A DNA stretch of 64,000 bases from Guillardia theta CCMP2712. Taxonomy: Eukaryota > Protista > Cryptophyta. Position numbers and translations under genes: made by a program. Of the stretch, positions 45,701 to 64,000 are shown in pieces (within the stretch, counting starts at the first letter, position 1; each line of letters starts with the position of its first letter). The stretch spans positions 145,038 to 209,037 of the forward strand of contig NW_005434618.1 in NCBI RefSeq assembly GCF_000315625.1. Reading direction: 5' to 3'. The notes beneath the pieces are model-generated. The model did no database searches. It saw only the letters and a program-made list of their open reading frames with translations, and was not told the DNA's origin.

Positions 45701-48700
45701 GTGGGAACAATCGTGTTTGGTAACAATTGTAGGAAGTCATCTTGACATCAAGGGAATGAATATATTTGTAAATTCAAGGAGATTGAATACTTCCTCTCTC
45801 AAAGTAGTGACTTCATCGAAGATTCTTGGTGTCATCCCATCTTCACGAAATTTCGAGCAAACTAAGATTTCTGTTTACTCCACGGACATGGTCGAATTAC
45901 ATAGCTTCGCTTTTTCATACCAACAAGCAGCAATCATTGAACGAGTTTCTCCATCAATTGTCCAATCCTTTGAATCTAGTACGTTGACTGTCTATGGAAA
46001 CTTTTTCCACAACTCTAGAGAACTTCTCTGCGTTTTTGGATTTGGTCACAAAGTCGCAGCGCACTTCCTTACCTCCACCTTGGTCACATGTACTACCCAA
46101 CCTTTTGTGAACGGATGTGTATCCCTTCGGATGCAAAACGTCTTATATGACGTAAGCATGAAAGGTAAACAAGTCTGTTTTAGACAGAGATTAAAAGTTT
46201 TCAACATTCATCCTACAAGCAGCTGCTTCGCTGGCGGAACAAAGATATCAGTGCAGTTGAACAGCGCTTTTGAAGATTTTAACGGAATTCAATGCCACTT
46301 TGGAAGGTTGGTTTCGGAAGCTACTCTAGTGAATGGATCTACAATTGAATGTATAGCCCCATCTTCGCATCAATCATTCTCCGTCGATGTCAGACTTTCT
46401 AAAAATTCCTTATACCTAGATGGGCATTTCAAGTTTGAATACATCAGAGCACCTCAGATTTTTGGAATATATCCATCCTGGAGTACAACATTTGGAAGGA
46501 CGATTGTACAGGTCAATGGAAGATACTTTACAAAAGAAAGTATGGAAATTGCTCTTGGGAACACACTTCTTAACTCCAAGAGTCTTACTTTCCTTACTTC
46601 CACTGTCATCAAAATTGTTGTTCCAAGCAGCAACGGAACATTGGGAATAACCAGTCTCCAGATCTGTAACAAGTTTTGTCCAGATAGCAAAGAAATCACT
46701 GATTTTGAGTATGTTTCAGAGATCCAAATCACAGGGGTAATTCCGTCGTTCTCTGATGGGCAGGGACATGTTGTGACAATTCAAGGGAAAAATTTCAATA
46801 CAAAACTTGAATATTGTTGCAAGTTTGGTGCATCATTTGCAACGATAAGTAAAGTATTGACTGATTCAGTGATGACTTGTTATTTTCCGAGTATGAGTGA
46901 GGGTACTATGGTCAGGGTCCAGATCGGTCCAGCATGTCAGTTTGTGACAACAAGTCATCTATGGATCAGCGTAAATATTCCCGAGCTCTTGATTGACATT
47001 TTCCCCACTCTTGGACCAATGAAAGGTGGAACTCTCATTCACTTGGTGCTGCCTGAACCAAAAGTCTCGATTGATTTCAGTAAGGGCATATGCAGTTTTG
47101 GAAATCATTCCACTTCGATTGCAATTATCAAAAATATGCCTGTCTGTGGCTCAACTCCAGATGTGCTTACACCACAACGTAAAACCCTTGTTGCTGCGTT
47201 GTCTAACTCTAGGATGCGTTTGAGAGCCAAAACAGGTTTTCTTTTCTATGAAGACCCAAACATTTATTCCATTTATCCCTCCATCGTTAAAAGCCATGGT
47301 GGCCAGATTGTGAGCGTCTACGGCACTGGCTTTCGGCAAGGAGGGATTTCGTGTGGATTTGGCAGCGGCTTCTCCATAGCAGCTGGCCGATGGCAATCTT
47401 CTAGTCTAGTACTATGCTTCACCATACCCTCTAACCAAACTACAACAAGATCGCTGGAGATCAGCTTGAATGGAGGGTATGACTTCACTGATAGCGGTGC
47501 AGAGATACTATACGAGGACGGAGCTGTCTTGACAGGTGTGAGCCCTTCGAGAGCGATGAGCGATACGCCCAACCAGGTTGTCACCATTTCCGGAGACTCT
47601 TTCAAGCAAGGCTGTCGACATGTCTGTCACTTTGGAACAAGTGCAGAAACGCGTGCTGTATATCTCACGTCATCCAGCTTGGTATGCTCCGTGCCAAGGA
47701 GCAAGCCGAGCACTGTTTTGTTGACAGTAGCTCAGGATGGGTTGAAGAGTGAGGAAGGGGTTTGGTTTGTTTACGAGCATTATCATTCAGCTGACTTGAG
47801 CCCGAGCACTGGGTCATCCTTGGGGGGCACAGAAGTGACGGTTCGGAGCAACACGCTTCAAGACACCTATACGGAAGGAGGCTGTTGGTTTGGCAGTGCG
47901 TATGTGCCAGGACGCATCGTTGCTCGTAACAGTCTTGTCTGTGTCAGCCCACAGTACCTTGGCAACGACAAAGTGGTAGGGGTGAAGGTCATGCTGCACC
48001 GAGCGGAAGGAGGAGATGTGTACCTGGATACGAGTTTCGCATACAGGGTTCCGGCGTTGACTGATAGAGTTACTCCGACCGTGGGATCGAAGAACGGAGG
48101 TACTTCTGTGCTCGTTGTTGGATCCAACCTAGAGCCATCACATAGATGCCTGTTCGGCGGAGTTGAGGCAGCCCGTTCCCAGCTGATATCATCATCGGCT
48201 CTTGAGTGTTTTACACCTGCATCAAGCTTTGTTGGACGTGTTGTTGTACAAGTGAGCCTTGACGGCAGTATAGAAATGTCTGCCATGAAGCTGAGCTTCA
48301 CATATGCACCTGATGCAACGGTACACTTTGCGAACATGGGCTCGATGGTATATCAGAGTGTTGTGGTTCTGACTGGAGAGCACTTTCAGGACAGCAATTC
48401 ACTGACGTGCAAATTTGGTGGATCCAAATCAGTACTTGGTTTATATCAGACTTCAACCCTGGTGCAATGCTCTGTGCCGATGCTTGATACTGGCACATAT
48501 GCTGTCGGAATCAGTAACAATGGAGTAGATCGCGGAGTAGGTGCTGCAGTGGTCCAGTATAGGAATGCGATACAGATCTTTGATGTAACTCCTAGCCAGG
48601 GATCACTGTCAGGAGGAGGGCAGATCACTGTCCATGGAAGTGGTTTTCCTACACAAGATGGCCCCGCGTTGTGCTGGGTAGACCAGGTGTCTTCAGTTGC

Positions 48701-51700
48701 GATCGCTCAGCATTCGTCGCATGTGGTATGCATATTACAAGGACGGCAAGAGGCTGGTGTTGTAGACGTCTACTTGCAGTGGGGACGAGTAGCTGGGAGG
48801 AGTACTCATGTTCTATTTGAATATATCAATCCTGCGGAAATCGTGGGCATCATGCCGAGTGTCGGGAGCCTCAAGCCACGTTCAGGGTCAAGGGTAACTG
48901 TCATTGGGTCAGGCTTCGACGCGGGAGTGGGGCTGCGATGTCGATTTGGTAACGCGAATTGTACAAGGTCCGCAGTGAAGTGGGTAACGTCCAGTCTAAT
49001 ACAGTGCTTGGTACCCGAACAATCTGTGCCGGGACCTGTAGAAGTGAAAGTCAGCAATGATGGAGGGAGAGAGTACTCGACAAACGGACCAGCTTTTCTT
49101 TACGAGGACCCCCCTTCTGTACACGGGATATTTCCAAAAGTCATCAGGCCAGGGGTCTCACATCAAAGCACGATATCTGTGATTGGGAAGCTTTTCAAGA
49201 ACGTACCAAATTATGTAGCGTGTCTCTATGGCAGTAATAGTATCATACAGGGGGATTACATCTCATCGACACTCATTGTCTGCCAAACACCGAGAAATGT
49301 CAGTGGGACAGTGGCTGTTGCGGTCAGGACAGGTTGGCATGGGTTTGTGTCGGGGCCAGGATGTTTTGTGTCTGTGCTAGGAGCTCAATCCTTCATGATT
49401 CAACCTACCTCTGGCCCATTGAGTGGAGGGACCCTTGTAACAATTACTGGGATCCACTCCGGCATGTATGATACAACAGAAGAAATCTGCTGTTTCTTTG
49501 GGCACAACGGTACGAAAGTCACTTTGCTAAGCACTTCAGCCGTCCTTTGCACAGTGCCGGCAAGCTTCAGGTATGGTGTGGTTACCGTGAGTGTACTTAC
49601 GACATGCCGAGCAAGTGGTACCCTTGTGGGCACGAGGCCCTTTCTGTACCTGCCGGCAGTACATGTCGTCGATATCTATCCAAGACGAGGGTCCCAACAT
49701 GGCCGATCATCAATACGAATCATAGGAATAGGCTTCTTGGGAGACCGAGCAAGGTGTAAACTTGGGAATCTGTCTTCTCCCGAGGATGGAACGAGGATTG
49801 TCTCCTCCACTCTCATCGAATGCATTGCTCCTATTTCCGAGGCAATAGGTCAGACCTTGGTCAGAGTAAGCTTGGACGGTGGGCAGACGTTCTCATCAGA
49901 CGAGGTGGTCTTCACATACGAGGCTGACCCGACCGTGCTCTCTCTTCAGCCTTCAACAGCCTACAGCAAGATGAGCAACCAAGTTGTGACTGTCCACGGA
50001 AGGCATTTCACCGACGCCGGAGATCTTCTCTGTTGGTTTGGAGCAGGCCATGTCGTACGCGCTTTGTATGTGTCTTCTGTGAGAGTGCTGTGCTCTATTC
50101 CAGAGCAAAAGCCTGGTATGGTAAGAGTGACTGTGACCAAGGATGGTCATAATAATGCTCCTATCGATGCTTTAGCTTCTGCCTACTTGTTGTATCTGTA
50201 TTACAACAAAGGAATGAACTCTAGATTTACAATCTGGCCGACCAGCGGTCCATCTCTGGGAGGCTCAGTCGTACGACTGGTTGGTATTCAGGACTCACTG
50301 AAGATCTCAACTTGTTTATTTGATTACCAGACGGTCAACGTCGCAGTTTACAACCACAGCATTGCATGTGTATCCCCTGCACATGGAGAAACAGGTTCTG
50401 TCAAAATACAGCTCGTCCCATCGAGTCTATCCTCTCTCTCTGGCGTGGTGGACTTTGATCAAGCCGTGACTTTCTTCTATTATGATGATCCTGTCGTTGA
50501 CAGTGCGTTCTGGGTTGGGCAATCTGGCGGAGGTACGGCCTTCGTCAGTGTACTTGGCAGACATCTCATGGCCAATCACTCCATGTGTCGATTGACTTTT
50601 GAGTCTGGAGACAGCAAGGTACTCCCAGGCACGAGCCAGACTTCCACCAAGATTCTTTGTGTGTCTCCTCCTCTTCCGCAAAGCGTAGGCAGGACTTGGG
50701 TATCGATCAGTTTGAACGATGGTGTAGACTTCACCTCAAGTAACACCCTAGTATCGACAAGCAGCAAGATCGATGTAAAGAGTGTGTGGCCGTCCACAGG
50801 AGGTACAGATGGAGACATGGTGATTACAATCTTTGGTGCGATGTTCTATCCGCGCCAGCATCGTCTTGACTGCTGGTTCGGCTTCCGAGTGAGCACTCCA
50901 GCCCTCTATTCCAGCTCTACTCTGGTCAAGTGTGCCGTGCCGAAGCTCCTTCCCGGTACCGTCGCTGTGTACTTGGGCGATGAGCAGGGCATACATGGCA
51001 ATAGCAACGGTCAATACACGGTCGTAAGTAGGGGACATGTCCATGCAGTCGAGCCGAGCAGCGGGCCGGTGACAGGAGGTACCGCCGTCGTCATGAGCGT
51101 GCGAGGAGGTGCAGGCTTTGCGTCAGCTATCTTCTGTCGTATTGGGGAAGGTCAGGTGGTGCAGGCCCAAGCGCTCAGCAGCTCCAGGATCCTTTGCACC
51201 ATGCCGGCTGTACAGAAGAGCGGGACAGTGCTGATACGGGCAGTAGAGGGAGCCCAAGGGTCGAGTAGGGGCCTTGAGGGAGAAGTGAGGTATGTTTACT
51301 ACAATGAGCCTGTGGTGACTCGCGTGGAGCCAAGCAGTGGCGCTCTGGAAGGGGGTACCATGCTGAGCCTGTATGGGCGGGGGCTGGAAGAAGGCAGCAA
51401 TCTAACGTGCAGGTTCGGGACCGGAGATGCGGTCGCAGGCCGGCAAGAGACTTCTACGATGGCCACCTGTGTTGCACCCCCGCGCCCAGTCAAGGACGTC
51501 GTCTGGTTGCAGGTGAGCCTCAACGGAGGCGCGGACTTCTCCGGATCTGCAGTCGAGTACGCATATGAGGCCGGGGCTACGGTGGACGAGGTGAGGCCGT
51601 CCGCGGGAGATAGCGGGGTCGACGGGCAGACCGTGACGGTGATAGGCCGCCACTTCGGGTCGGGACAAGGGCTGAGCTGCTTGTTCGGGACAAGGGGGCG

Positions 51701-54700
51701 GGTACGGGGCATGCCGATGACGTCGACGGCGGTAGTCTGTGTAGCGCCGAGAGGGGGTCCGGGGGCGGTCGGGGTATCGGTGAGCAACAACGGAGTGGAT
51801 GAAGGGCAAACAAGGGGCGGGTTCGTGTACAGCGGTGATCTTAAGGTAATACGCAAGGTCACCCCAAGCTCAGGGCCGTTGGCTGGGGGTACCAACGTGA
51901 CCATAGCAGTCGACGGTTTGCGTCGGGCGGCGTTGTCATGGACGACAGAGAGACCTTGGGGTTGCGTTTTTGGAACCTCAGTCGTGCAAGCACAAGCTTT
52001 GACCACGTCGCTGATCAGCTGTAAGTCGCCTACAAGCTTGCGGGCAGGAGAAACGAAGATAGAGATAGAACTGTCCAACCATGGTCCAACATTGAGTATA
52101 GAGTCTGCATTCGTCTACTACGAGGGGCCAGAGGTGAGCTCGGTGGTGCCCAGCATAGGGAGACAGACGGGAGGTATGGTGGTAAGTGTCGTGGGCCAGG
52201 GCCTCATATCCCGAGATCCCGTTTGTCAATTTGGCCCGTCCATAGTCCAGGGCAAGGACGTTACGAGCCTTAGCTCATCATTGCTGCTATGTACCACGCC
52301 CGCATCACTGCTTGGCAGTACGGTAGTCAGGCTGCAGGTGAGCCTCAACGGAGGCGCGGACTTCTCCGGATCTGCAGTCGAGTACGCATATGAGGCCGGG
52401 GCTACGGTGGACGAGGTGAGGCCGTCCGCGGGAGATAGCGGGGTCGACGGGCAGACCGTGACGGTGATAGGCCGCCACTTCGGGTCGGGACAAGGGCTGA
52501 GCTGCTTGTTCGGGACAAGGGGGCGGGTACGGGGCATGCCGATGACGTCGACGGCGGTAGTCTGTGTAGCGCCGAGAGGGGGTCCGGGGGCGGTCGGGGT
52601 ATCGGTGAGCAACAACGGAGTAGAAGGAGAGACCGCTAGCGGCATCGTCAGCGTGAGGTATGAGTACCGCTCAGGGATGTCAGCAAAGTCCGTGGTACCT
52701 AGTCAGGGACCGTCAGTGGGAGGAACGGTCGTGAGAGTGATGCTTGAAGGGACGATCGGAGGTGAGGACGGGACTGGGGAGTGGCTCTGTGTATTCGGAG
52801 ACTCTATGAGCCGCGGGCAATTGAACGTGTCATCGCCGGACAACGCTTCCGTGGCATGCAATCTGCCACCATCGATGCCCTCTACCGTCTCTGTACAAGT
52901 GCGACGACCGAGTGGACAGAAGCTATCAGGGGACCTAAGGTTCCAGTACGTACTTCAAGCCAGGCTCATAAGTGTATCTCCAAGTCAAGGTGGAGCAGGG
53001 GGAGGATCGAGGGTGACCATCACAGGAGAGGGAATCGGGCGAGAGGGGCTGAGGTGCTGGTTTGGGGACAAGGCCGTGGAGGGGAGAGGCGTGGAGTGGA
53101 TATCGTCAAGCCTGGTGACGTGCATGACTCCAGAGCTTAACATCTATGATGGCGTAGTATCGATCGGCCTCGAACGGATTTTTTTCGTTTCAGAGGGTTT
53201 GCAATATCGAGTGTACAGTCTACCAGAGGTTTACAGTATAATGCCCTCGATGCTACATGCCGGCACTAAATCTTCAGCAGTGACCTTGACGGGTCATTTT
53301 GGAGTCTCTCCAGGCCCATTGTTTTGCAGAGTCTCAGGAACGAGTCTGTTCCCTGCAGAGATAATGTCAATTTCCCACGTTCGTTGCCAGATTTTCTCGA
53401 AAGTCACGGGTACGTTCGTAATGGATTTGGCATATTCTCTAGGGGATCGTCTCGCACAATTTGTCAAGGTTTTGTTTGTTCCCCAGCTTTGTAGATTTTC
53501 TATGGTGCCTACATCGGGACCTGATTCAGGAAGTACACGGATAAGGATTTCACTCCATGATTGCCATTTTTCGAGATCTGCTGCTGTGTCTTTTGGCTTT
53601 CAGAGAACGAGCTCGTCTCAACTTACCTCCACGCTTTTGATATGCTATAGCCCTGCTTTGACTTCTGACGCGAATACTTCTGTACGTGTCCAATTGTCTT
53701 CGCCCTCGTCTGGAATTCCTCTCACACTAGGGCAGCTATTTGTCTATTTCAAGACTCCGGTGGTGTCAAAGGTGTTTCCTTCATTTGACACGATACTGGG
53801 AAGGTCGAGTGTGCTTATTGAAGGGGTTGAATTTCCACCGGCTAGCATTGCGTGCAAGTTTGGTCAACGAGTTTCAAACGAATCTGAATGGTTGTCTTCA
53901 TCGGCGCTGTCGTGCACCGTACCACCAACAGATGCCACGCAAACTGTCAAACTCTATGTGAGTTTCAATCACGGCGTGGACTTCACAGATTCCCAGGTAG
54001 ATTTCATGTACACTGCACTGATGACCACAACACGAATCGTACCGACGGCGGTACCGCTTAATGCCTTGAGTGCAATTACACTTTACGGTTCTCATTTCTC
54101 AGATATGGAGGATTTGAGCTGTAGCATTGGATCTAGATTACGTGTTCCAGCCTTCTTTCAATCTTCAAGCATCGTAAAGTGTACAATTAATCAATTGGTT
54201 CCAGGGCGTTACACTCTGAAAGTCAGTAGTGAAGGTACTTCATTCCGAGATAGAAATGGTCCAGTGTTGGAGGTTTTGCCCAGGTCTGGTCGTTTATTGC
54301 TATGGCCAACTTTAGGACCTGTGTTGGGTGGAACAAGAATATGGTTGTCGTTTGTAGATCCCATGGATTATAACGAAATTCTGGTGGTGAAATTTGGTAC
54401 AATTGAGGTGGTAGGTAAACTGTACAACCATTCTCATATCTTGCTTGTGGCTCCACCGTCAAAGGCTCGATCCCCGTGCGTTGTACAAGTGCAGTCATCA
54501 CTTCCCTATCCAATATCTACCCGATATCAGTATTACCTCCCTCCAATGGTCAATGGCATCTCTCCATCTGTTGGGCATGTTGGCGATTCTGACATTCGGA
54601 TATATATATCTGGAACTTTATTCCAACCTGACTTGCTTAGGGTAAGGTTCGGAACAGAAACATTAGATGCTAAAAAGACTACTTTCGTAACTTCCACCTT

Positions 54701-57700
54701 GCTGCTCTGTAGTGCACCTATCGTATATCATGAACGAGTGGTACATGTCACTTTTACGGTTGATGGTCAAGAATACCTTGATGGTGTAGAAGTCTCAAGA
54801 TTCGTCTATGTAAAGACTCCTCAGGTTTTCGAAGTAGTGCACAACCATTGCATCAGAGATGAGGATTTGATTACAGTTGTTGGAGACAGCTTTTCAGAAC
54901 TGTCAGTTTCTGAATGTCGATTTGCACATAGAACGACAACTCGTGGCTTTCTGATGTCTTCTTCAGCGATAACATGCTCTGTGCCACAAATTTCCTACAA
55001 GCAAACTCTGCTCAACATTGTGGTTGATGGAAGGAAGATCTTCAAGTCTGAAATTTCAAAATGTCAGCGCGATGGAGTCAGAATACATCCAAGTCTTGGT
55101 CCCAGCACCGGAGGATCCCAAATATTGGTGGAGAGCCAACATCAAGAAATGCGCCCTCGTGACCCAGTACGGTGCTGGTTCAGACAATCTGTAGTACAAG
55201 GGAGATGGATAGCCTCAAACAAAGTTGAATGTATTTCACCTCCTTTCTCAGGTCTACATAATTCCACAGAAGCTGTAACACTGTCAGTTATCAGCGGAAG
55301 CTACAAAATGGAATCCATATTCTTATACTTTGTACCATCCCAAATATACGACATTACCCCAAGGACAACTTATGCCGGCACATCTCAAACATTGACAGTG
55401 ATTGGACAGGCATTTCATGGCGAGCTTGTGCCATCTTGCATCTTCAATCGCTTGACGAGAAGAAGCGATGTGAAAACATTGTCATCAACAAAACTCGTGT
55501 GCAATGTCGGCAACTTGCAGGCATCAAATTATTTCCTTACAATTGAGTACAAGTACACAGGTAATCAAAGTTCAACGAACCCGATTTTGATCGAGCTCCT
55601 GAAGCCTCCACAAATTGAATCACTGACCTCCGAGATGAAAACTAGCAACCCCCCGATCATACAATTGAGAGGCAAACATTTCAATCCGTACCAGCATCGT
55701 CTTGACTGCTGGTTCGGCTTCCGAGTGAGCACTCCAGCCCTCTATTCCAGCTCTACTCTGGTCAAGTGTGCCGTGCCGAAGCTCCTTCCCGGTACCGTCG
55801 CTGTTTACTTGGGCGATGAGCAGGGCATACATGGCAATAGCAACGGTCAATACACGGTCGTAAGTAGGGGACATGTCCATGCAGTCGAGCCGAGCAGCGG
55901 GCCGGTGACAGGAGGTACCGCCGTCGTCATGAGCGTGCGAGGAGGTGCAGGCTTTGCGTCAGCTATCTTCTGTCGTATTGGGGAAGGTCAGGTGGTGCAG
56001 GCCCAAGCGCTCAGCAGCTCCAGGATCCTTTGCACCATGCCGGCTGTACAGAAGAGCGGGACAGTGCTGATACGGGCAGTAGAGGGAGCCCAAGGGTCGA
56101 GTAGGGGCCTTGAGGGAGAAGTGAGGTATGTTTACTACAATGAGCCTGTGGTGACTCGCGTGGAGCCAAGCAGTGGCGCTCTGGAAGGGGGTACCATGCT
56201 GAGCCTGTATGGGCGGGGGCTGGAAGAAGGCAGCAATCTAACGTGCAGGTTCGGGACCGGAGATGCGGTCGCAGGCCGGCAAGAGACTTCTACGATGGCC
56301 ACCTGTGTTGCACCCCCGCGCCCAGTCAAGGACGTCGTCTGGTTGCAGGTGAGCCTCAACGGAGGCGCGGACTTCTCCGGATCTGCAGTCGAGTACGCAT
56401 ATGAGGCTGGGGCTACGGTGGACGAGGTGAGGCCGTCCGCGGGAGATAGCGGGGTCGACGGTCAGACCGTGACGGTGATAGGCCGCCACTTCGGGTCGGG
56501 ACAAGGGCTGAGCTGCTTGTTCGGGACAAGGGGGCGGGTACGGGGCATGCCGATGACGTCGACGGCGGTAGTCTGTGTAGCGCCGAGAGGGGGTCCGGGG
56601 GCGGTCGGGGTATCGGTGAGCAACAACGGAGTGGATGAAGGGCAAACAAGGGGCGGGTTCGTGTACAGCGGTGATCTTAAGGTAATACGCAAGGTCACCC
56701 CAAGCTCAGGGCCATTGGCTGGGGGTACCAACGTGACCATAGCAGTCGACGGTTTGCGTCGGGCGGCGTTGTTATGGAAGTCGGAAATGCCTTTGTGGTG
56801 TTTATTCCGGGGAATTTCGGAAAACAGAAACGCAGTAAGGGGACGGGCTTTGACCACGTCGCTGATCAGCTGTAAGTCGCCTACAAGCTTGCGGGCAGGA
56901 GAAACGAAGATAGAGATAGAACTGTCCAACCATGGTCCAACATTGAGTATAGAGTCTGCATTCGTCTACTACGAGGGGCCAGAGGTAAGCTCGGTGGTGC
57001 CCAGCATAGGGAGACAGACGGGAGGTATGGTGGTAAGTGTCGTGGGCCAGGGCCTCATATCCCGAGATCCCGTTTGTCAATTTGGCCCGTCCATAGTCCA
57101 GGGCAAGGACGTTACGAGCCTTAGCTCATCATTGCTGCTATGTACCACGCCCGCATCACTGCTTGGCAGTACGGTAGTCAGGCTGCAGGTGAGCCTCAAC
57201 GGAGGCGCGGACTTCTCCGGATCTGCAGTCGAGTACGCATATGAGGCCGGGGCTACGGTGGACGAGGTGAGGCCGTCCGCGGGAGATAGCGGGGTCGACG
57301 GGCAGACCGTGACGGTGATAGGCCGCCACTTCGGGTCGGGACAAGGGCTGAGCTGCTTGTTCGGGACAAGGGGGCGGGTACGGGGCATGCCGATGACGTC
57401 GACGGCGGTAGTCTGTGTAGCGCCGAGAGGGGGTCCGGGGGCGGTCGGGGTATCGGTGAGCAACAACGGAGTAGAAGGAGAGACCGCTAGCGGCATCGTC
57501 AGCGTGAGGTATGAGTACCGCTCAGGGATGTCAGCAAAGTCCGTGGTACCTAGTCAGGGACCGTCAGTGGGAGGAACGGTCGTGAGAGTGATGCTTGAAG
57601 GGACGATCGGAGGTGAGGACGGGACTGGGGAGTGGCTCTGTGTATTCGGAGACTCTATGAGCCGCGGGCAATTGAACGTGTCATCGCCGGACAACGCTTC

Positions 57701-60700
57701 CGTGGCATGCAATCTGCCACCATCGATGCCCTCTACCGTCTCTGTACAAGTGCGACGACCGAGTGGACAGAAGCTATCAGGGGACCTAAGGTTCCAGTAC
57801 GTACTTCAAGCCAGGCTCATAAGTGTATCTCCAAGTCAAGGTGGAGCAGGGGGAGGATCGAGGGTGACCATCACAGGAGAGGGAATCGGGCGAGAGGGGC
57901 TGAGGTGCTGGTTTGGGGACAAGGCCGTGGAGGGGAGAGGCGTGGAGTGGATATCGTCAAGCCTGGTGACGTGCATGACTGTAGCAATGAATGAGGCGGG
58001 AGGATATTCCAAGATCTTGCTTTATTTTCAGGGACAGATTTGTGGACCACCCGTAATTTATAATGGTGTTGGTATTCCCCTTCTCAAGAGTATCAGTCCT
58101 TCTATTGGTATTGTCAACCTTCAAGGTCAGATTGCAACCTTGATAGGAGAGGGCTTTCATCTCAATGCTGCTTCAGTCTACTGTAGGCTTGGCTTAGGAC
58201 ACACAGTACGTGCTGTAAGTGTATCATCATCAATGGCTGTGTGTACAGTACCTTTGGTCAAACAGGCTGGACTTTCTCAGTTCACATGTTCGCCATACAA
58301 GCAACCGAGTGGCAGTGAGCAAAGTCTACAGTACTTGTTCTTGGACATAGGAAGAATTGATGCTATCTTTCCCACAGCTGGACCCATACGTGGAGGCAGT
58401 AGTGTAAGCGTGATTGGTCTGAAAGAACATGAAATTAGCTTCAAATACAGGTGCCGATTTGGGAACGATGAGGTGCAAGGAAGCTTTGTTGGAAACCATA
58501 CTTTGGTCTGCACCTCTCCTCAAACTAATCAAGAAGGAAGAGTTACTGTCTCAGTATTTGCCAATAGATACAGCCTGGACAATGGTCAAGTTTACGAGTA
58601 TTTCCTCTCTCCAGCCCTAAAGAGAATAGATCCATCTGTGGTAGGTAGGGGAGGTGGCCAGATTGTGAGCGTCTACGGCACTGGCTTTCGGCAAGGAGGG
58701 ATTTCGTGTGGATTTGGCAGCGGCTTCTCCATAGCAGCTGGCCGATGGCAATCTTCTAGTCTAGTACTATGCTTCACCATACCCTCTAACCAAACTACAA
58801 CAAGATCGCTGGAGATCAGCTTGAATGGAGGGTATGACTTCACTGATAGCGGTGCAGAGATACTATACGAGGACGGAGCTGTCTTGACAGGTGTGAGCCC
58901 TTCGAGAGCGATGAGCGATACGCCCAACCAGGTTGTCACCATTTCCGGAGACTCTTTCAAGCAAGGCTGTCGACATGTCTGTCACTTTGGAACAAGTGCA
59001 GAAACGCGTGCTGTATATCTCACGTCATCCAGCTTGGTATGCTCCGTGCCAAGGAGCAAGCCGAGCACTGTTTTGTTGACAGTAGCTCAGGATGGGTTGA
59101 AGAGTGAGGAAGGGGTTTGGTTTGTTTACGAGCATTATCATTCAGCTGACTTGAGCCCGAGCACTGGGTCATCCTTGGGGGGCACAGAAGTGACGGTTCG
59201 GAGCAACACGCTTCAAGACACCTATACGGAAGGAGGCTGTTGGTTTGGCAGTGCGTATGTGCCAGGACGCATCGTTGCTCGTAACAGTCTTGTCTGTGTC
59301 AGCCCACAGTACCTTGGCAACGACAAAGTGGTAGGGGTGAAGGTCATGCTGCACCGAGCGGAAGGAGGAGATGTGTACCTGGATACGAGTTTCGCATACA
59401 GGGTTCCGGCGTTGACTGATAGAGTTACTCCGACCGTGGGATCGAAGAACGGAGGTACTTCTGTGCTCGTTGTTGGATCCAACCTAGAGCCATCACATAG
59501 ATGCCTGTTCGGCGGAGTTGAGGCAGCCCGTTCCCAGCTGATATCATCATCGGCTCTTGAGTGTCTTACACCTGCATCAAGCTTTGTTGGACGTGTTGTT
59601 GTACAAGTGAGCCTTGACGGCAGTATAGAAATGTCTGCCATGAAGCTGAGCTTCACATATGCACCTGATGCAACGGTACACTTTGCGAACATGGGCTCGA
59701 TGGTATATCAGAGTGTTGTGGTTCTGACTGGAGAGCACTTTCAGGACAGCAATTCACTGACGTGCAAATTTGGTGGATCCAAATCAGTACTTGGTTTATA
59801 TCAGACTTCAACCCTGGTGCAATGCTCTGTGCCGATGCTTGATACTGGCACATATGCTGTCGGAATCAGTAACAATGGAGTAGATCGCGGAGTAGGTGCT
59901 GCAGTGGTCCAGTATAGGTATGCGATACAGATCTTTGATGTAACTCCTAGCCAGGGATCACTGTCAGGAGGAGGGCAGATCACTGTCCATGGAAGTGGTT
60001 TTCCTACACAAGATGGCCCCGCGTTGTGCTGGGTAGACCAGGTGTCTTCAGTTGCGATCGCTCAGCATTCGTCGCATGTGGTATGCATATTACCAGGACG
60101 GCAAGAGGCTGGTGTTGTAGACGTCTACTTGCAGTGGGGACGAGTAGCTGGGAGGAGTACTCATGTTCTATTTGAATATATCAATCCTGCGGAAATCGTG
60201 GGCATCATGCCGAGTGTCGGGAGCCTCAAGCCACGTTCAGGGTCAAGGGTAACTGTCATTGGGTCAGGCTTCGACGCGGGAGTGGGGCTGCGATGTCGAT
60301 TTGGTAACGCGAATTGTACAAGGTCCGCAGTGAAGTGGGTAACGTCCAGTCTAATACAGTGCTTGGTACCCGAACAATCTGTGCCGGGACCTGTAGAAGT
60401 GAAAGTCAGCAATGATGGAGGGAGGGAGTACTCGACAAACGGACCAGCTTTTCTTTACGAGGACCCCCCTTCTGTACACGGGATATTTCCAAAAGTCATC
60501 AGGCCAGGGGTCTCACATCAAAGCACGATATCTGTGATTGGGAAGCTTTTCAAGAACGTACCAAATTATGTATCGTGTCTCTATGGCAGTAATAGTATCA
60601 TACAGGGGGATTACATCTCATCGACACTCATTGTCTGCCAAACACCGAGAAATGTCAGTGGGACAGTGGCTGTTGCGGTCAGGACAGGTTGGCATGGGTT

Positions 60701-63700
60701 TGTGTCGGGGCCAGGATGTTTTGTGTCTGTGCTAGGAGCTCAATCCTTCATGATTCAACCTACCTCTGGCCCATTGAGTGGAGGGACCCTTGTAACAATT
60801 ACTGGGATCCACTCCGGCATGTATGATACAACAGAAGAAATCTGCTGTTTCTTTGGGCACAACGGTACGAAAGTCACTTTGCTAAGCACTTCAGCCGTCC
60901 TTTGCACAGTGCCGGCAAGCTTCAGGTATGGTGTGGTTACCGTGAGTGTACTTACGACATGCCGAGCAAGTGGTACCCTTGTGGGCACGAGGCCCTTTCT
61001 GTACCTGCCGGCAGTACATGTCGTCGATATCTATCCAAGACGAGGGTCCCAACATGGCCGATCATCAATACGAATCATAGGAATAGGCTTCTTGGGAGAC
61101 CGAGCAAGGTGTAAACTTGGGAATCTGTCTTCTCCCGAGGATGGAACGAGGATTGTCTCCTCCACTCTCATCGAATGCATTGCTCCTATTTCCGAGGCAA
61201 TAGGTCAGACCTTGGTCAGAGTAAGCTTGGACGGTGGGCAGACGTTCTCATCAGACGAGGTGGTCTTCACATACGAGGCTGACCCGACCGTGCTCTCTCT
61301 TCAGCCTTCAACAGCCTACAGCAAGATGAGCAACCAAGTTGTGACTGTCCACGGAAGGCATTTCACCGACGCCGGAGATCTTCTCTGTTGGTTTGGAGCA
61401 GGCCATGTCGTACGCGCTTTGTATGTGTCTTCTGTGAGAGTGCTGTGCTCTATTCCAGAGCAAAAGCCTGGTATGGTAAGAGTGACTGTGACCAAGGATG
61501 GTCATAATAATGCTCCTATCGATGCTTTAGCTTCTGCCTACTTGTTGTATCTGTATTACAACAAAGGAATGAACTCTAGATTTACAATCTGGCCGACCAG
61601 CGGTCCATCTCTGGGAGGCTCAGTCGTACGACTGGTTGGTATTCAGGACTCACTGAAGATCTCAACTTGTTTATTTGATTACCAGACGGTCAACGTCGCA
61701 GTTTACAACCACAGCATTGCATGTGTATCCCCTGCACATGGAGAAACAGGTTCTGTCAAAATACAGCTCGTCCCATCGAGTCTATCCTCTCTCTCTGGCG
61801 TGGTGGACTTTGATCAAGCCGTGACTTTCTTCTATTATGATGATCCTGTCGTTGACAGTGCGTTCTGGGTTGGGCAATCTGGCGGAGGTACGGCCTTCGT
61901 CAGTGTACTTGGCAGACATCTCATGGCCAATCACTCCATGTGTCGATTGACTTTTGAGTCTGGAGACAGCAAGGTACTCCCAGGCACGAGCCAGACTTCC
62001 ACCAAGATTCTTTGTGTGTCTCCTCCTCTTCCGCAAAGCGTAGGCAGGACTTGGGTATCGATCAGTTTGAACGATGGTGTAGACTTCACCTCAAGTAACA
62101 CCCTAGTATCGACAAGCAGCAAGATCGATGTAAAGAGTGTGTGGCCGTCCACAGGAGGTACAGATGGAGACATGGTGATTACAATCTTTGGTGCGATGTT
62201 CTATCCGCGCCAGCATCGTCTTGACTGCTGGTTCGGCTTCCGAGTGAGCACTCCAGCCCTCTATTCCAGCTCTACTCTGGTCAAGTGTGCCGTGCCGAAG
62301 CTCCTTCCCGGTACCGTCGCTGTGTACTTGGGCGATGAGCAGGGCATACATGGCAATAGCAACGGTCAATACACGGTCGTAAGTAGGGGACATGTCCATG
62401 CAGTCGAGCCGAGCAGCGGGCCGGTGACAGGAGGTACCGCCGTCGTCATGAGCGTGCGAGGAGGTGCAGGCTTTGCGTCAGCTATCTTCTGTCGTATTGG
62501 GGAAGGTCAGGTGGTGCAGGCCCAAGCGCTCAGCAGCTCCAGGATCCTTTGCACCATGCCGGCTGTACAGAAGAGCGGGACAGTGCTGATACGGGCAGTA
62601 GAGGGAGCCCAAGGGTCGAGTAGGGGCCTTGAGGGAGAAGTGAGGTATGTTTACTACAATGAGCCTGTGGTGACTCGCGTGGAGCCAAGCAGTGGCGCTC
62701 TGGAAGGGGGTACCATGCTGAGCCTGTATGGGCGGGGGCTGGAAGAAGGCAGCAATCTAACGTGCAGGTTCGGGACCGGAGATGCGGTCGCAGGCCGGCA
62801 AGAGACTTCTACGATGGCCACCTGTGTTGCACCCCCGCGCCCAGTCAAGGACGTCGTCTGGTTGCAGGTGAGCCTCAACGGAGGCGCGGACTTCTCCGGA
62901 TCTGCAGTCGAGTACGCATATGAGGCCGGGGCTACGGTGGACGAGGTGAGGCCGTCCGCGGGAGATAGCGGGGTCGACGGTCAGACCGTGACCGTGATAG
63001 GCCGCCACTTCGGGTCGGGACAAGGGCTGAGCTGCTTGTTCGGGACAAGGGGGCGGGTACGGGGCATGCCGATGACGTCGACGGCGGTAGTCTGTGTAGC
63101 GCCGAGAGGGGGTCCGGGGGCGGTCGGGGTATCGGTGAGCAACAACGGAGTGGATGAAGGGCAAACAAGGGGCGGGTTCGTGTACAGCGGTGATCTTAAG
63201 GTAATACGCAAGGTCACCCCAAGCTCAGGGCCGTTGGCTGGGGGTACCAACGTGACCATAGCAGTCGACGGTTTGCGTCGGGCGGCGTTGTCATGGACGA
63301 CAGAGAGACCTTGGGGTTGCGTTTTTGGAACCTCAGTCGTGCAAGCACAAGCTTTGACCACGTCGCTGATCAGCTGTAAGTCGCCTACAAGCTTGCGGGC
63401 AGGAGAAACGAAGATGTCGTTGGTGGACGATCTTGGTAACGTCGTTGTCAAGGGCAAGTCTGCATTCGTCTACTACGAGGGGCCAGAGGTAAGCTCGGTG
63501 GTGCCCAGCATAGGGAGACAGACGGGAGGTATGGTGGTAAGTGTCGTGGGCCAGGGCCTCATATCCCGAGATCCCGTTTGTCAATTTGGCCCGTCCATAG
63601 TCCAGGGCAAGGACGTTACGAGCCTTAGCTCATCATTGCTGCTATGTACCACGCCCGCATCACTGCTTGGCAGTACGGTAGTCAGGCTGCAGGTGAGCCT

Positions 63701-64000
63701 CAACGGAGGCGCGGACTTCTCCGGATCTGCAGTCGAGTACGCATATGAGGCCGGGGCTACGGTGGACGAGGTGAGGCCGTCCGCGGGAGATAGCGGGGTC
63801 GACGGGCAGACCGTGACGGTGATAGGCCGCCACTTCGGGTCGGGACAAGGGCTGAGCTGCTTGTTCGGGACAAGGGGGCGGGTACGGGGCATGCCGATGA
63901 CGTCGACGGCGGTAGTCTGTGTAGCGCCGAGAGGGGGTCCGGGGGCGGTCGGGGTATCGGTGAGCAACAACGGAGTAGAAGGAGAGACCGCTAGCGGCAT
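36796..64000 (+). CDS. giant secreted/cell-surface IPT/TIG (Ig-like) repeat protein, >9,000 aa, truncated by the window end
   Basis: Signal peptide MMPKLEIICRILILLIACGFR|ELSC; introns at ~36860-36902, 37184-37233 and 38126-38167. One reading frame then runs from 38169 to 64000 with repeated P.SGP..GGT.VTI.G.NF...C.FG...S...C..P...V.VS.NG.DF units. The ORF track shows no stop-terminated + ORF in that frame after 38169. Confidence 0.93.
37716..37757. repeat. 21-bp in-frame tandem duplication (SNNLVDF x2)
   Basis: tcgaacaatttggtggatttc repeated twice. Confidence 0.9.
47298..52645. repeat. copy A of a >=5.3-kb near-identical direct repeat (partner 58653-64000, offset 11,355 bp)
   Basis: Shadow ORFs recur at a constant offset (47814/59169, 48806/60161, 50427/61782, 52226/63581). 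Confidence 0.95.
51508..51796. repeat. 289-bp single-IPT-domain unit, six copies (51508, 52333, 56344, 57184, 62863, 63688)
   Basis: tgcaggtgagcctcaacggaggcgcggac...gagcaacaacggagt repeated nearly exactly. Confidence 0.93.
55691..57980. repeat. copy B: 2.3-kb duplicate of 50855-53129 (offset 4,836 then 4,851 bp)
   Basis: Identical shadow ORFs at 51402/56238 and 52781/57632; the offset shifts by 15 bp at a replaced patch. Confidence 0.95.
58653..64000. repeat. copy C of the long direct repeat (partner 47298-52645), runs off the window
   Basis: Begins at ggtggccagattgtgagcgtc; about 8 point differences and one 41-nt replaced patch relative to copy A, counted by eye. Confidence 0.95.

Follow-up and report, generated by a model that had tools for sequence, protein, structure and literature searches.

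Two short dimorphic patches in near-identical repeat blocks of a giant IPT/TIG gene of Guillardia theta

How can three copies of a repeat remain nearly identical over more than 2 kb and yet carry, within a single domain, two short segments that scarcely resemble each other? This question is raised by a stretch of the genome of the cryptophyte Guillardia theta CCMP2712 (assembly GCF_000315625.1, contig NW_005434618.1, positions 145,038-209,037 of the forward strand; 64,000 nucleotides (nt), hereafter the window), which contains part of one giant gene for tandem IPT/TIG domains. Three blocks of this gene, A, B, and C, differ from one another mainly in patch 1 (variants p1A and p1B) and patch 2 (variants p2A and p2C). 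One possible answer comes from the donor-archive systems, that is, the variant surface glycoprotein (VSG) mosaics of trypanosomes, the conversion of chicken immunoglobulin (Ig) genes by pseudogenes, and pilE/pilS of Neisseria. As in those systems, short in-frame segments are replaced here between near-identical flanks in a presumed surface protein, and the original prediction for this locus, which was made from the sequence alone, proposed a diversification system of this kind. We favor another explanation, in which the patches are probably old dimorphic heterology islands in a small homogenised repeat family that persist or move as units under concerted evolution.

The analysis covered the window and its downstream continuation to ~94 kb; "extended" coordinates continue the window numbering, and L006 denotes the sequence just past the window end (L006:463 is extended 64463). 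Repeats were defined by self-comparison of the window, the blocks by a three-way alignment, and the patch-bearing domain by a domain alignment, and genome-wide searches were made in the 87,145,349-base assembly (669 contigs). Three sequencing runs, X1 (2011), X2 (2021 DNA), and X9 (a 2023 freshwater metagenome), were compared as assembled contigs and depths on L006:1585-6340, which holds assembly copies D and E of the patch region and in which all four patch variants are present.

The two patches and their domain

Outside patches 1 and 2, blocks A, B, and C are ~99.8% identical. The domain that bears both patches occurs as three mosaics of the four variants:

51849-52133, + strand: patch-bearing IPT domain, copy A, with p1A and p2A (domain alignment; AlphaFold2 pLDDT 85, IPT fold)
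56685-56984, + strand: patch-bearing IPT domain, copy B, with p1B and p2A (domain alignment)
63204-63488, + strand: patch-bearing IPT domain, copy C, with p1A and p2C (domain alignment; AlphaFold2 pLDDT 86, strands as in copy A)
51937-51995, + strand: patch 1, variant p1A, with an identical copy at 63292-63350 (alignments; residues 30-49)
56773-56846, + strand: patch 1, variant p1B, 15 nt longer (alignments; contig of about single-copy depth in X1 and X2)
52061-52101, + strand: patch 2, variant p2A, with an identical copy at 56912-56952 (alignments; seen in X1; residues 71-85)
63416-63456, + strand: patch 2, variant p2C (alignments; seen in X2 and in the relative in X9)

Variant p1A (copies A and C) encodes SWTTERPWGCVFGTSVVQAQ and p1B (copy B) encodes LWKSEMPLWCLFRGISENRNAVRGR; the two are ~54% identical over 59 aligned nt. 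The two forms of patch 2 have equal length and differ at 35 of 41 nt, with 0.06 differences expected per 41-nt window (Poisson P about 1e-82), so that scattered point mutation cannot account for the patches. The reading frame and the Cys are retained across the variants. Both forms of patch 1 keep W..E.P..C.F, and both forms of patch 2 keep an alternating strand pattern and a Gly in register; judged from their sequences, both versions of each patch look like genuine in-register IPT segments. As a description of the locus, the original prediction therefore stands. Its three mosaics of one IPT domain within near-identical flanks were reproduced at their positions by both alignments, the variants are distributed among the copies exactly as it had them (A equal to C and B longer by 15 nt in patch 1, A equal to B and C of the same length in patch 2), and it was right about the frame, the Cys, and the improbability of point mutation.

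Its assignment of both patches to one IPT/TIG domain is borne out by profile as well as by fold. The Pfam TIG family (PF01833) matches along the open reading frame with E values of 1e-62 to 1e-139 (1.5e-62 with 7 stretches in 762 amino acids). AlphaFold2 models of the A-type and C-type domains, with predicted local distance difference test (pLDDT) values of 85 and 86, have the same strands, and in Foldseek they match solved IPT/TIG domains of EBF1, EBF3, CAMTA1, MET, and plexin at template modelling (TM) scores of 0.72-0.85 and probability 1.00 (0.76-0.85 for the TIG domains of EBF1 and CAMTA1). Models and matches alike have the seven- to eight-stranded Ig-like sandwich of the IPT/TIG family. 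Patch 1 is placed in the B-C loop and strands C and C' (residues 30-49), and patch 2 at the end of strand F, in the F-G loop, and at the start of strand G (residues 71-85). Based on Ig-fold topology rather than measured contacts, both patches would thus lie on one sheet (C-C'-F-G).

All three blocks lie inside an open reading frame on the + strand (38157-64619) that runs for 8,821 codons without a stop. A profile derived from this same region detected more than 210 IPT domains across 36.9-94 kb of the extended sequence. Most of them are unique and old, being 13-33% identical in amino acids to the patch-bearing domain, and the patch phenomenon is limited to this one domain: no other among ~200 shows such patches at 99% identity. 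In protein collections, the 95-amino-acid patch-bearing domain had no match and a 762-amino-acid query retrieved only the public gene model on the same contig and distant IPT proteins; neither of two scans of metagenome contig collections matched a relative.

Independent sequencing and the search for donors

Could the patches be artefacts of the reference assembly, arising from chimeric reads, errors in the consensus, or repeats that were collapsed or expanded? Assembly is difficult in this region, as is evident from gaps of N at extended 65315-65584, from C515, a small contig of the same repeats that is unplaced, and from what is probably a false duplication just downstream. All four variants were nevertheless found in independent public runs, which argues that the patches are not reference errors. 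The full p1B is present with both flanks in 134-nt contigs of X1 and X2, and its depth in X2 is 120, compared with 135-143 for single-copy sequence. Variant p1A is seen directly in X9; its presence in X1 and X2 is deduced from bin depths, which in X2 are about twice single-copy. For patch 2, contigs of 367 nt each contain one variant with its flanks, p2A in X1 and p2C in X2. Furthermore, just 65 nt separate the two patches, and single reference reads therefore span both. The independent contigs largely refute an artefact, which we regard as scarcely credible.

The X9 sample holds a ~2%-diverged relative: about half of the words of the stretch occur there, in contigs that are 1.5-2.5% different, and these matching contigs indicate that a close relative of G. 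theta was present. In this relative, p1A and p2C stand together on one 499-nt contig at roughly three times its single-copy depth, which suggests that both predate the split between the two lineages. At one place X9 also shows two variants, as 205-nt contigs of which one has 2 differences and the other 10.

Runs X1 and X2 otherwise agree letter for letter over 4.7 kb, but across patch 2 their contigs carry opposite variants. Contig building drops minority branches, and the depth of the X2 contig across patch 2 is no lower than that of the three-copy flanks. This difference could be a technical effect; were it genuine, the two versions would be distributed differently among the copies in the two cultures. 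In the reference and in X1, X2, and X9, each patch has two states only, the chimeric patch of assembly copy D being without support. The many alternatives that characterize donor-archive systems are therefore missing from these four sources.

DNA and codon-degenerate searches of the 87-Mb assembly found no donor for any of the four variants. In the whole-genome DNA search, p1B occurred in copies B and D only, and p2C in C, E, and C515 only. A short-word search of both strands of the 94 kb gave no other source for any of the four, and peptide searches of the 94 kb gave no further match. Whole-genome codon-degenerate patterns for 11-residue cores of p2C, p2A, and p1B recovered the known copies only; matches with three mismatches (on contigs C188, C48, and C59) were as frequent as in a reversed control and are not IPT domains. 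The exact donors that the original prediction expected elsewhere in the genome thus did not appear, each variant being confined to the homologous copies themselves, and the assembly contains no silent donor repertoire of the kind on which donor-archive systems draw.

Several other origins were also considered. An inversion or a template switch from a nearby inverted copy has no reverse-complement or local source in the 94 kb, and a pair of frameshifts was rejected because the DNA itself differs and not just its reading. A diversity-generating retroelement would need a second patch copy as template and differences specific to adenine; no such copy was found, and bases of all four kinds are involved where p1A and p1B differ. 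A tandem stack of allelic haplotypes is unlikely, as the nuclear genome of G. theta is reported to be haploid (PMC4007541). Block A is not a simple recombinant of B and C, for the flanking single-base states do not fit cleanly.

Homogenised repeats and the origin of the patches

The patches are embedded in a nested set of repeats, all within the same stop-free frame:

38157-64000, continuing past the window, + strand: stop-free frame with tandem IPT/TIG domains, part of one giant gene (open reading frame and Pfam)
47298-53107, + strand: 5.8-kb segment, first copy, which holds block A (self-comparison)
58653-64000, on to extended 64462, + strand: 5.8-kb segment, second copy, which holds block C (self-comparison)
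50844-53129, + strand: block A of the three-copy 2.3-kb family, GC content at third codon positions (GC3) 0.65 (alignment)
55680-57980, + strand: block B of the same family, GC3 0.65 (alignment)
62199-64000, on to extended 64462, + strand: block C of the same family (alignment)
51498-51796, + strand: 299-nt block, about one domain long, GC3 0.70-0.75 (self-comparison)

Over 5.8 kb, 47298-53107 and 58653-64462 have 9 single-base differences in addition to patch 2. The borders of the blocks are sharp, and block B is flanked by unrelated IPT domains that are AT-rich. Further copies of the 299-nt block lie at 52323, 56334, 57174, 62853, and 63678 and are 98-100% identical; its edges coincide with the strand motif V.VS.NG. 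In particular, 51498-51796 and 52323-52621 are 100% identical, and the remainder of the two 825-nt units that contain them is just 30-50% identical. A domain-length piece has therefore been transferred in register between diverged domains of this gene. Both this block and the borders of A, B, and C show the sharp, in-register boundaries between diverged paralogues that define mosaic tracts.

Base composition follows the same borders. Unique domains have a GC3 of 0.35-0.41, the two-copy part reaches 0.49 and blocks A, B, and C reach 0.65, and the 299-nt block has the highest values (0.70-0.75); the steps fall exactly on the block borders. By copy number (1, 2, 3, and 6) GC3 rises from 0.42 through 0.49 and 0.61 to 0.75 (rho 0.58; 144 windows, corrected frame). 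This is the compositional trace expected of biased conversion in repeated tracts. Since a recent duplicate of an AT-rich domain would remain AT-rich, the GC-rich repeats point to GC-biased conversion acting over a long time. In addition, identity is 99.8% within the genome and about 98% to the relative in X9, whose block contigs have 2-3 times its single-copy depth. The copies therefore appear more alike within a genome than between lineages, as is characteristic of concerted evolution, the copy number of the relative being deduced from depth.

Based on these observations, we consider it probable that the patches are old dimorphic heterology islands in a small repeat family under concerted evolution. 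Blocks A, B, and C would be paralogous pieces of one giant IPT/TIG-array gene, kept near-identical by recurrent, GC-biased intragenic gene conversion or unequal exchange. Patches 1 and 2 would be short segments for which the family carries two old and very divergent versions, each of which would move or persist as a whole, because a stretch so different cannot pair partway, and the sharp edges would thereby be preserved. Which copy holds which version may be a matter of drift and possibly of selection; we consider selection because both patches are predicted to sit on the same sheet of the domain. The alternative versions may have originated in an ancient single in-register import from an IPT domain that has since been lost, or may be the leftover of an older divergence. 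We infer an old age for the islands, a homogenising role for conversion, and the absence of dedicated machinery. As far as conversion can be demonstrated in this gene, its effect is to homogenise, not to diversify.

Several observations weigh against this interpretation. Variants p2A and p1B were not seen in the relative in X9, so that the relative dates only p1A and p2C. The opposite patch-2 variants of X1 and X2 hint at a turnover faster than the drift of old islands. The GC3 windows are not independent, as copies share sequence, and the multi-copy state of the relative is read from contig depth only. The razor-sharp edges of the patches and the 85% mismatch in patch 2 fit a single replacement better than a slow escape from conversion, and it is mechanistically awkward for a remnant of the original sequence to survive amid 2.3 kb of converted tract.

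The last two points lead to a closely related possibility, that the odd patches were imported after the blocks had become identical, through short-tract homeologous conversion or template switching from a diverged IPT domain during break repair. The donor would since have been lost, have diverged, or lie in unassembled sequence; this is the mechanism of the original prediction without a dedicated system. It would account for the sharp edges, the conserved length of patch 2, and the maintenance of frame and Cys, and it is consistent with the resemblance of both alternatives to real in-register IPT segments and with the 299-nt block, which demonstrates in-register transfer between diverged domains here. 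The GC3 of p2A (0.40) is also like that of unique AT-rich domains, and that of p2C (0.73) like its surroundings, although this contrast is drawn from only 15 codons. Given, however, that the searches of the 87 Mb recovered no donor at the DNA or peptide level, and that the presence of p2A in two blocks (A and B) calls for a second transfer step, we judge a late import rather unlikely. The proposal of short-tract conversion from donors hence survives in part: conversion or recombination between IPT repeats is evident in the 299-nt block and in GC3, whereas the donor cassettes are absent from the assembly.

Programmed or high-rate diversification of a surface-protein domain by conversion, as in VSG or chicken Ig genes, we consider very improbable. 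It would make sense of the location of both patches in one domain, by the models on the same C-C'-F-G sheet, and of the opposite patch-2 variants in the contigs of X1 (2011) and X2 (2021), which are otherwise identical over 4.7 kb. Unlike donor-archive systems, however, the locus has no silent cassettes, each segment has two states, and these states are conserved: the letters of p1A, p1B, p2A, and p2C are unchanged wherever they recur among the reference, X1, X2, and the ~2%-diverged relative. The sole chimeric patch (copy D) is absent from X1 and X2 and lies inside a probable assembly artefact, and none of the other ~200 domains has such patches at 99% identity. On these grounds we do not uphold the diversification system of the original prediction. 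A bolder variant, which we think improbable, is that the patches form one functional face (the C-C'-F-G sheet) of one domain in a giant surface filament, and that their versions are specificity cassettes reshuffled among the three copies fast enough for sister cultures to differ. If true, it would represent a donor-less, within-gene mechanism of combinatorial variation in a cryptophyte.

The old islands that we favor have precedents. Islands of divergence that persist under conversion have been described (PMC3728101, PMC3924837), as has the homogenisation of repeats within a gene (PMC3933166). Like other cases of concerted evolution with islands (PMC3924837, PMC3728101, PMC2720389), this gene has long near-identical paralogue tracts with sharp boundaries, short regions that are still divergent, and copies closer within the genome than to a related lineage. 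Unlike in those cases, the copies here are formed by blocks of Ig-like domains that share a single giant open reading frame, and the islands are tiny (41-74 nt) and essentially unalignable instead of moderately diverged. Spider silk spidroins (PMC3933166) likewise contain long in-frame repeats in one very large exon, homogenised by unequal exchange or conversion; here, by contrast, most IPT domains are unique and old (about 20-30% amino-acid identity) and few blocks are homogenised. GC-biased conversion in segmental duplications (PMC10172114, PMC4467073) similarly raises GC specifically in duplicated, converting sequence, whereas the gradient described here is one of GC3 by copy number within one cryptophyte gene and the bias is read from composition. 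The pattern is thus already known, and is placed here inside one giant gene of a cryptophyte.

These comparisons suggest that the cassette look of the repeats is what concerted evolution and GC-biased conversion yield inside the giant IPT/TIG genes of this alga. Because homogenisation can produce that look, similar mosaics elsewhere in the genome should not be taken for antigenic variation unless there is evidence of donors and polymorphism. Of real interest are the two tiny and apparently very old heterology islands, predicted to share one sheet of one domain, and the possibility that two cultures differ in which copies carry which island.

The assembly past the window and other features of the gene

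Beyond the window end the assembly shows the two further copies, D and E. In copy D (extended 68108-68407), patch 1 is a chimera in which 21 nt from the start of p1A are joined to 57 nt from the end of p1B; copy E (extended 68948-69232) carries p1A and p2C. Several lines of evidence suggest that extended 64463-70206 (L006:463-6206; NW_005434618.1 209500-215243), in which 53202-57472 appears a second time and C is repeated, is probably a false duplication of ~5.7 kb and that C and E are probably one locus. Depths in X2 are 1-1.4 times single-copy for the sequence between A and B, against two copies in the assembly, about 3 times for the block flanks, against 4-5 copies, and about 5 times for the 299-nt block, against 9 copies; these depths fit three block copies, not five. 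Stretches of 760 nt and 2.2 kb of the second copy match the first at 100% identity and are followed by mixed A-, B-, and C-type single-base states. The chimeric patch of copy D was found in neither X1 nor X2 contigs, where only the full p1B appears.

Past 64462, C has 92 nt (64463-64554) identical to the sequence downstream of E, and then returns to A-type sequence with a -2 frameshift. The frameshift junction adjoins two gaps of N (extended 65315-65414 and 65470-65584), and the downstream contig of X1 and X2 runs across it unbroken and at single-copy depth. Deletion of 64463-70206 leaves one stop-free frame of 14,498 codons. We therefore flag the frameshift in the public assembly, along with the ~5.7 kb, as probably false. 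Copies A, B, and C inside the window are unaffected by this doubt, and copy D, the sole within-patch recombinant, is lost as evidence.

Two further features concern the assembly. The unplaced contig C515 (4,639 nt) joins sequence of a 792-nt repeat (like extended 73597-75345) to C/E-type sequence (like 62538-64555), an adjacency not present in the main contig; C515 may represent either an extra copy that was not resolved or a leftover of chimeric origin. In addition, at L006 3228 (extended 67228) X1 and X2 have G and the reference T, and at L006 6026 (extended 70026) X1, X2, and X9 have C and the reference T. These mismatches probably reflect either errors in the reference or states found just in the doubtful copies D and E.

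Further in-frame repeats, both free of divergent patches, occur downstream: a 792-nt repeat in three copies at extended 72939-75345 (99.8-100% identical), and an ~819-nt repeat in two near-identical copies at extended about 88700-90400. No intron is apparent over more than 43 kb of coding sequence (window 36920-64000, on to at least extended 94000). The public annotation represents the gene as fragments only, such as the 931-amino-acid model P0001 at extended 67058-69793. Among RNA data, 11 reads of the raw-read run X22 fall on the region, too few to say more than that it is weakly represented.

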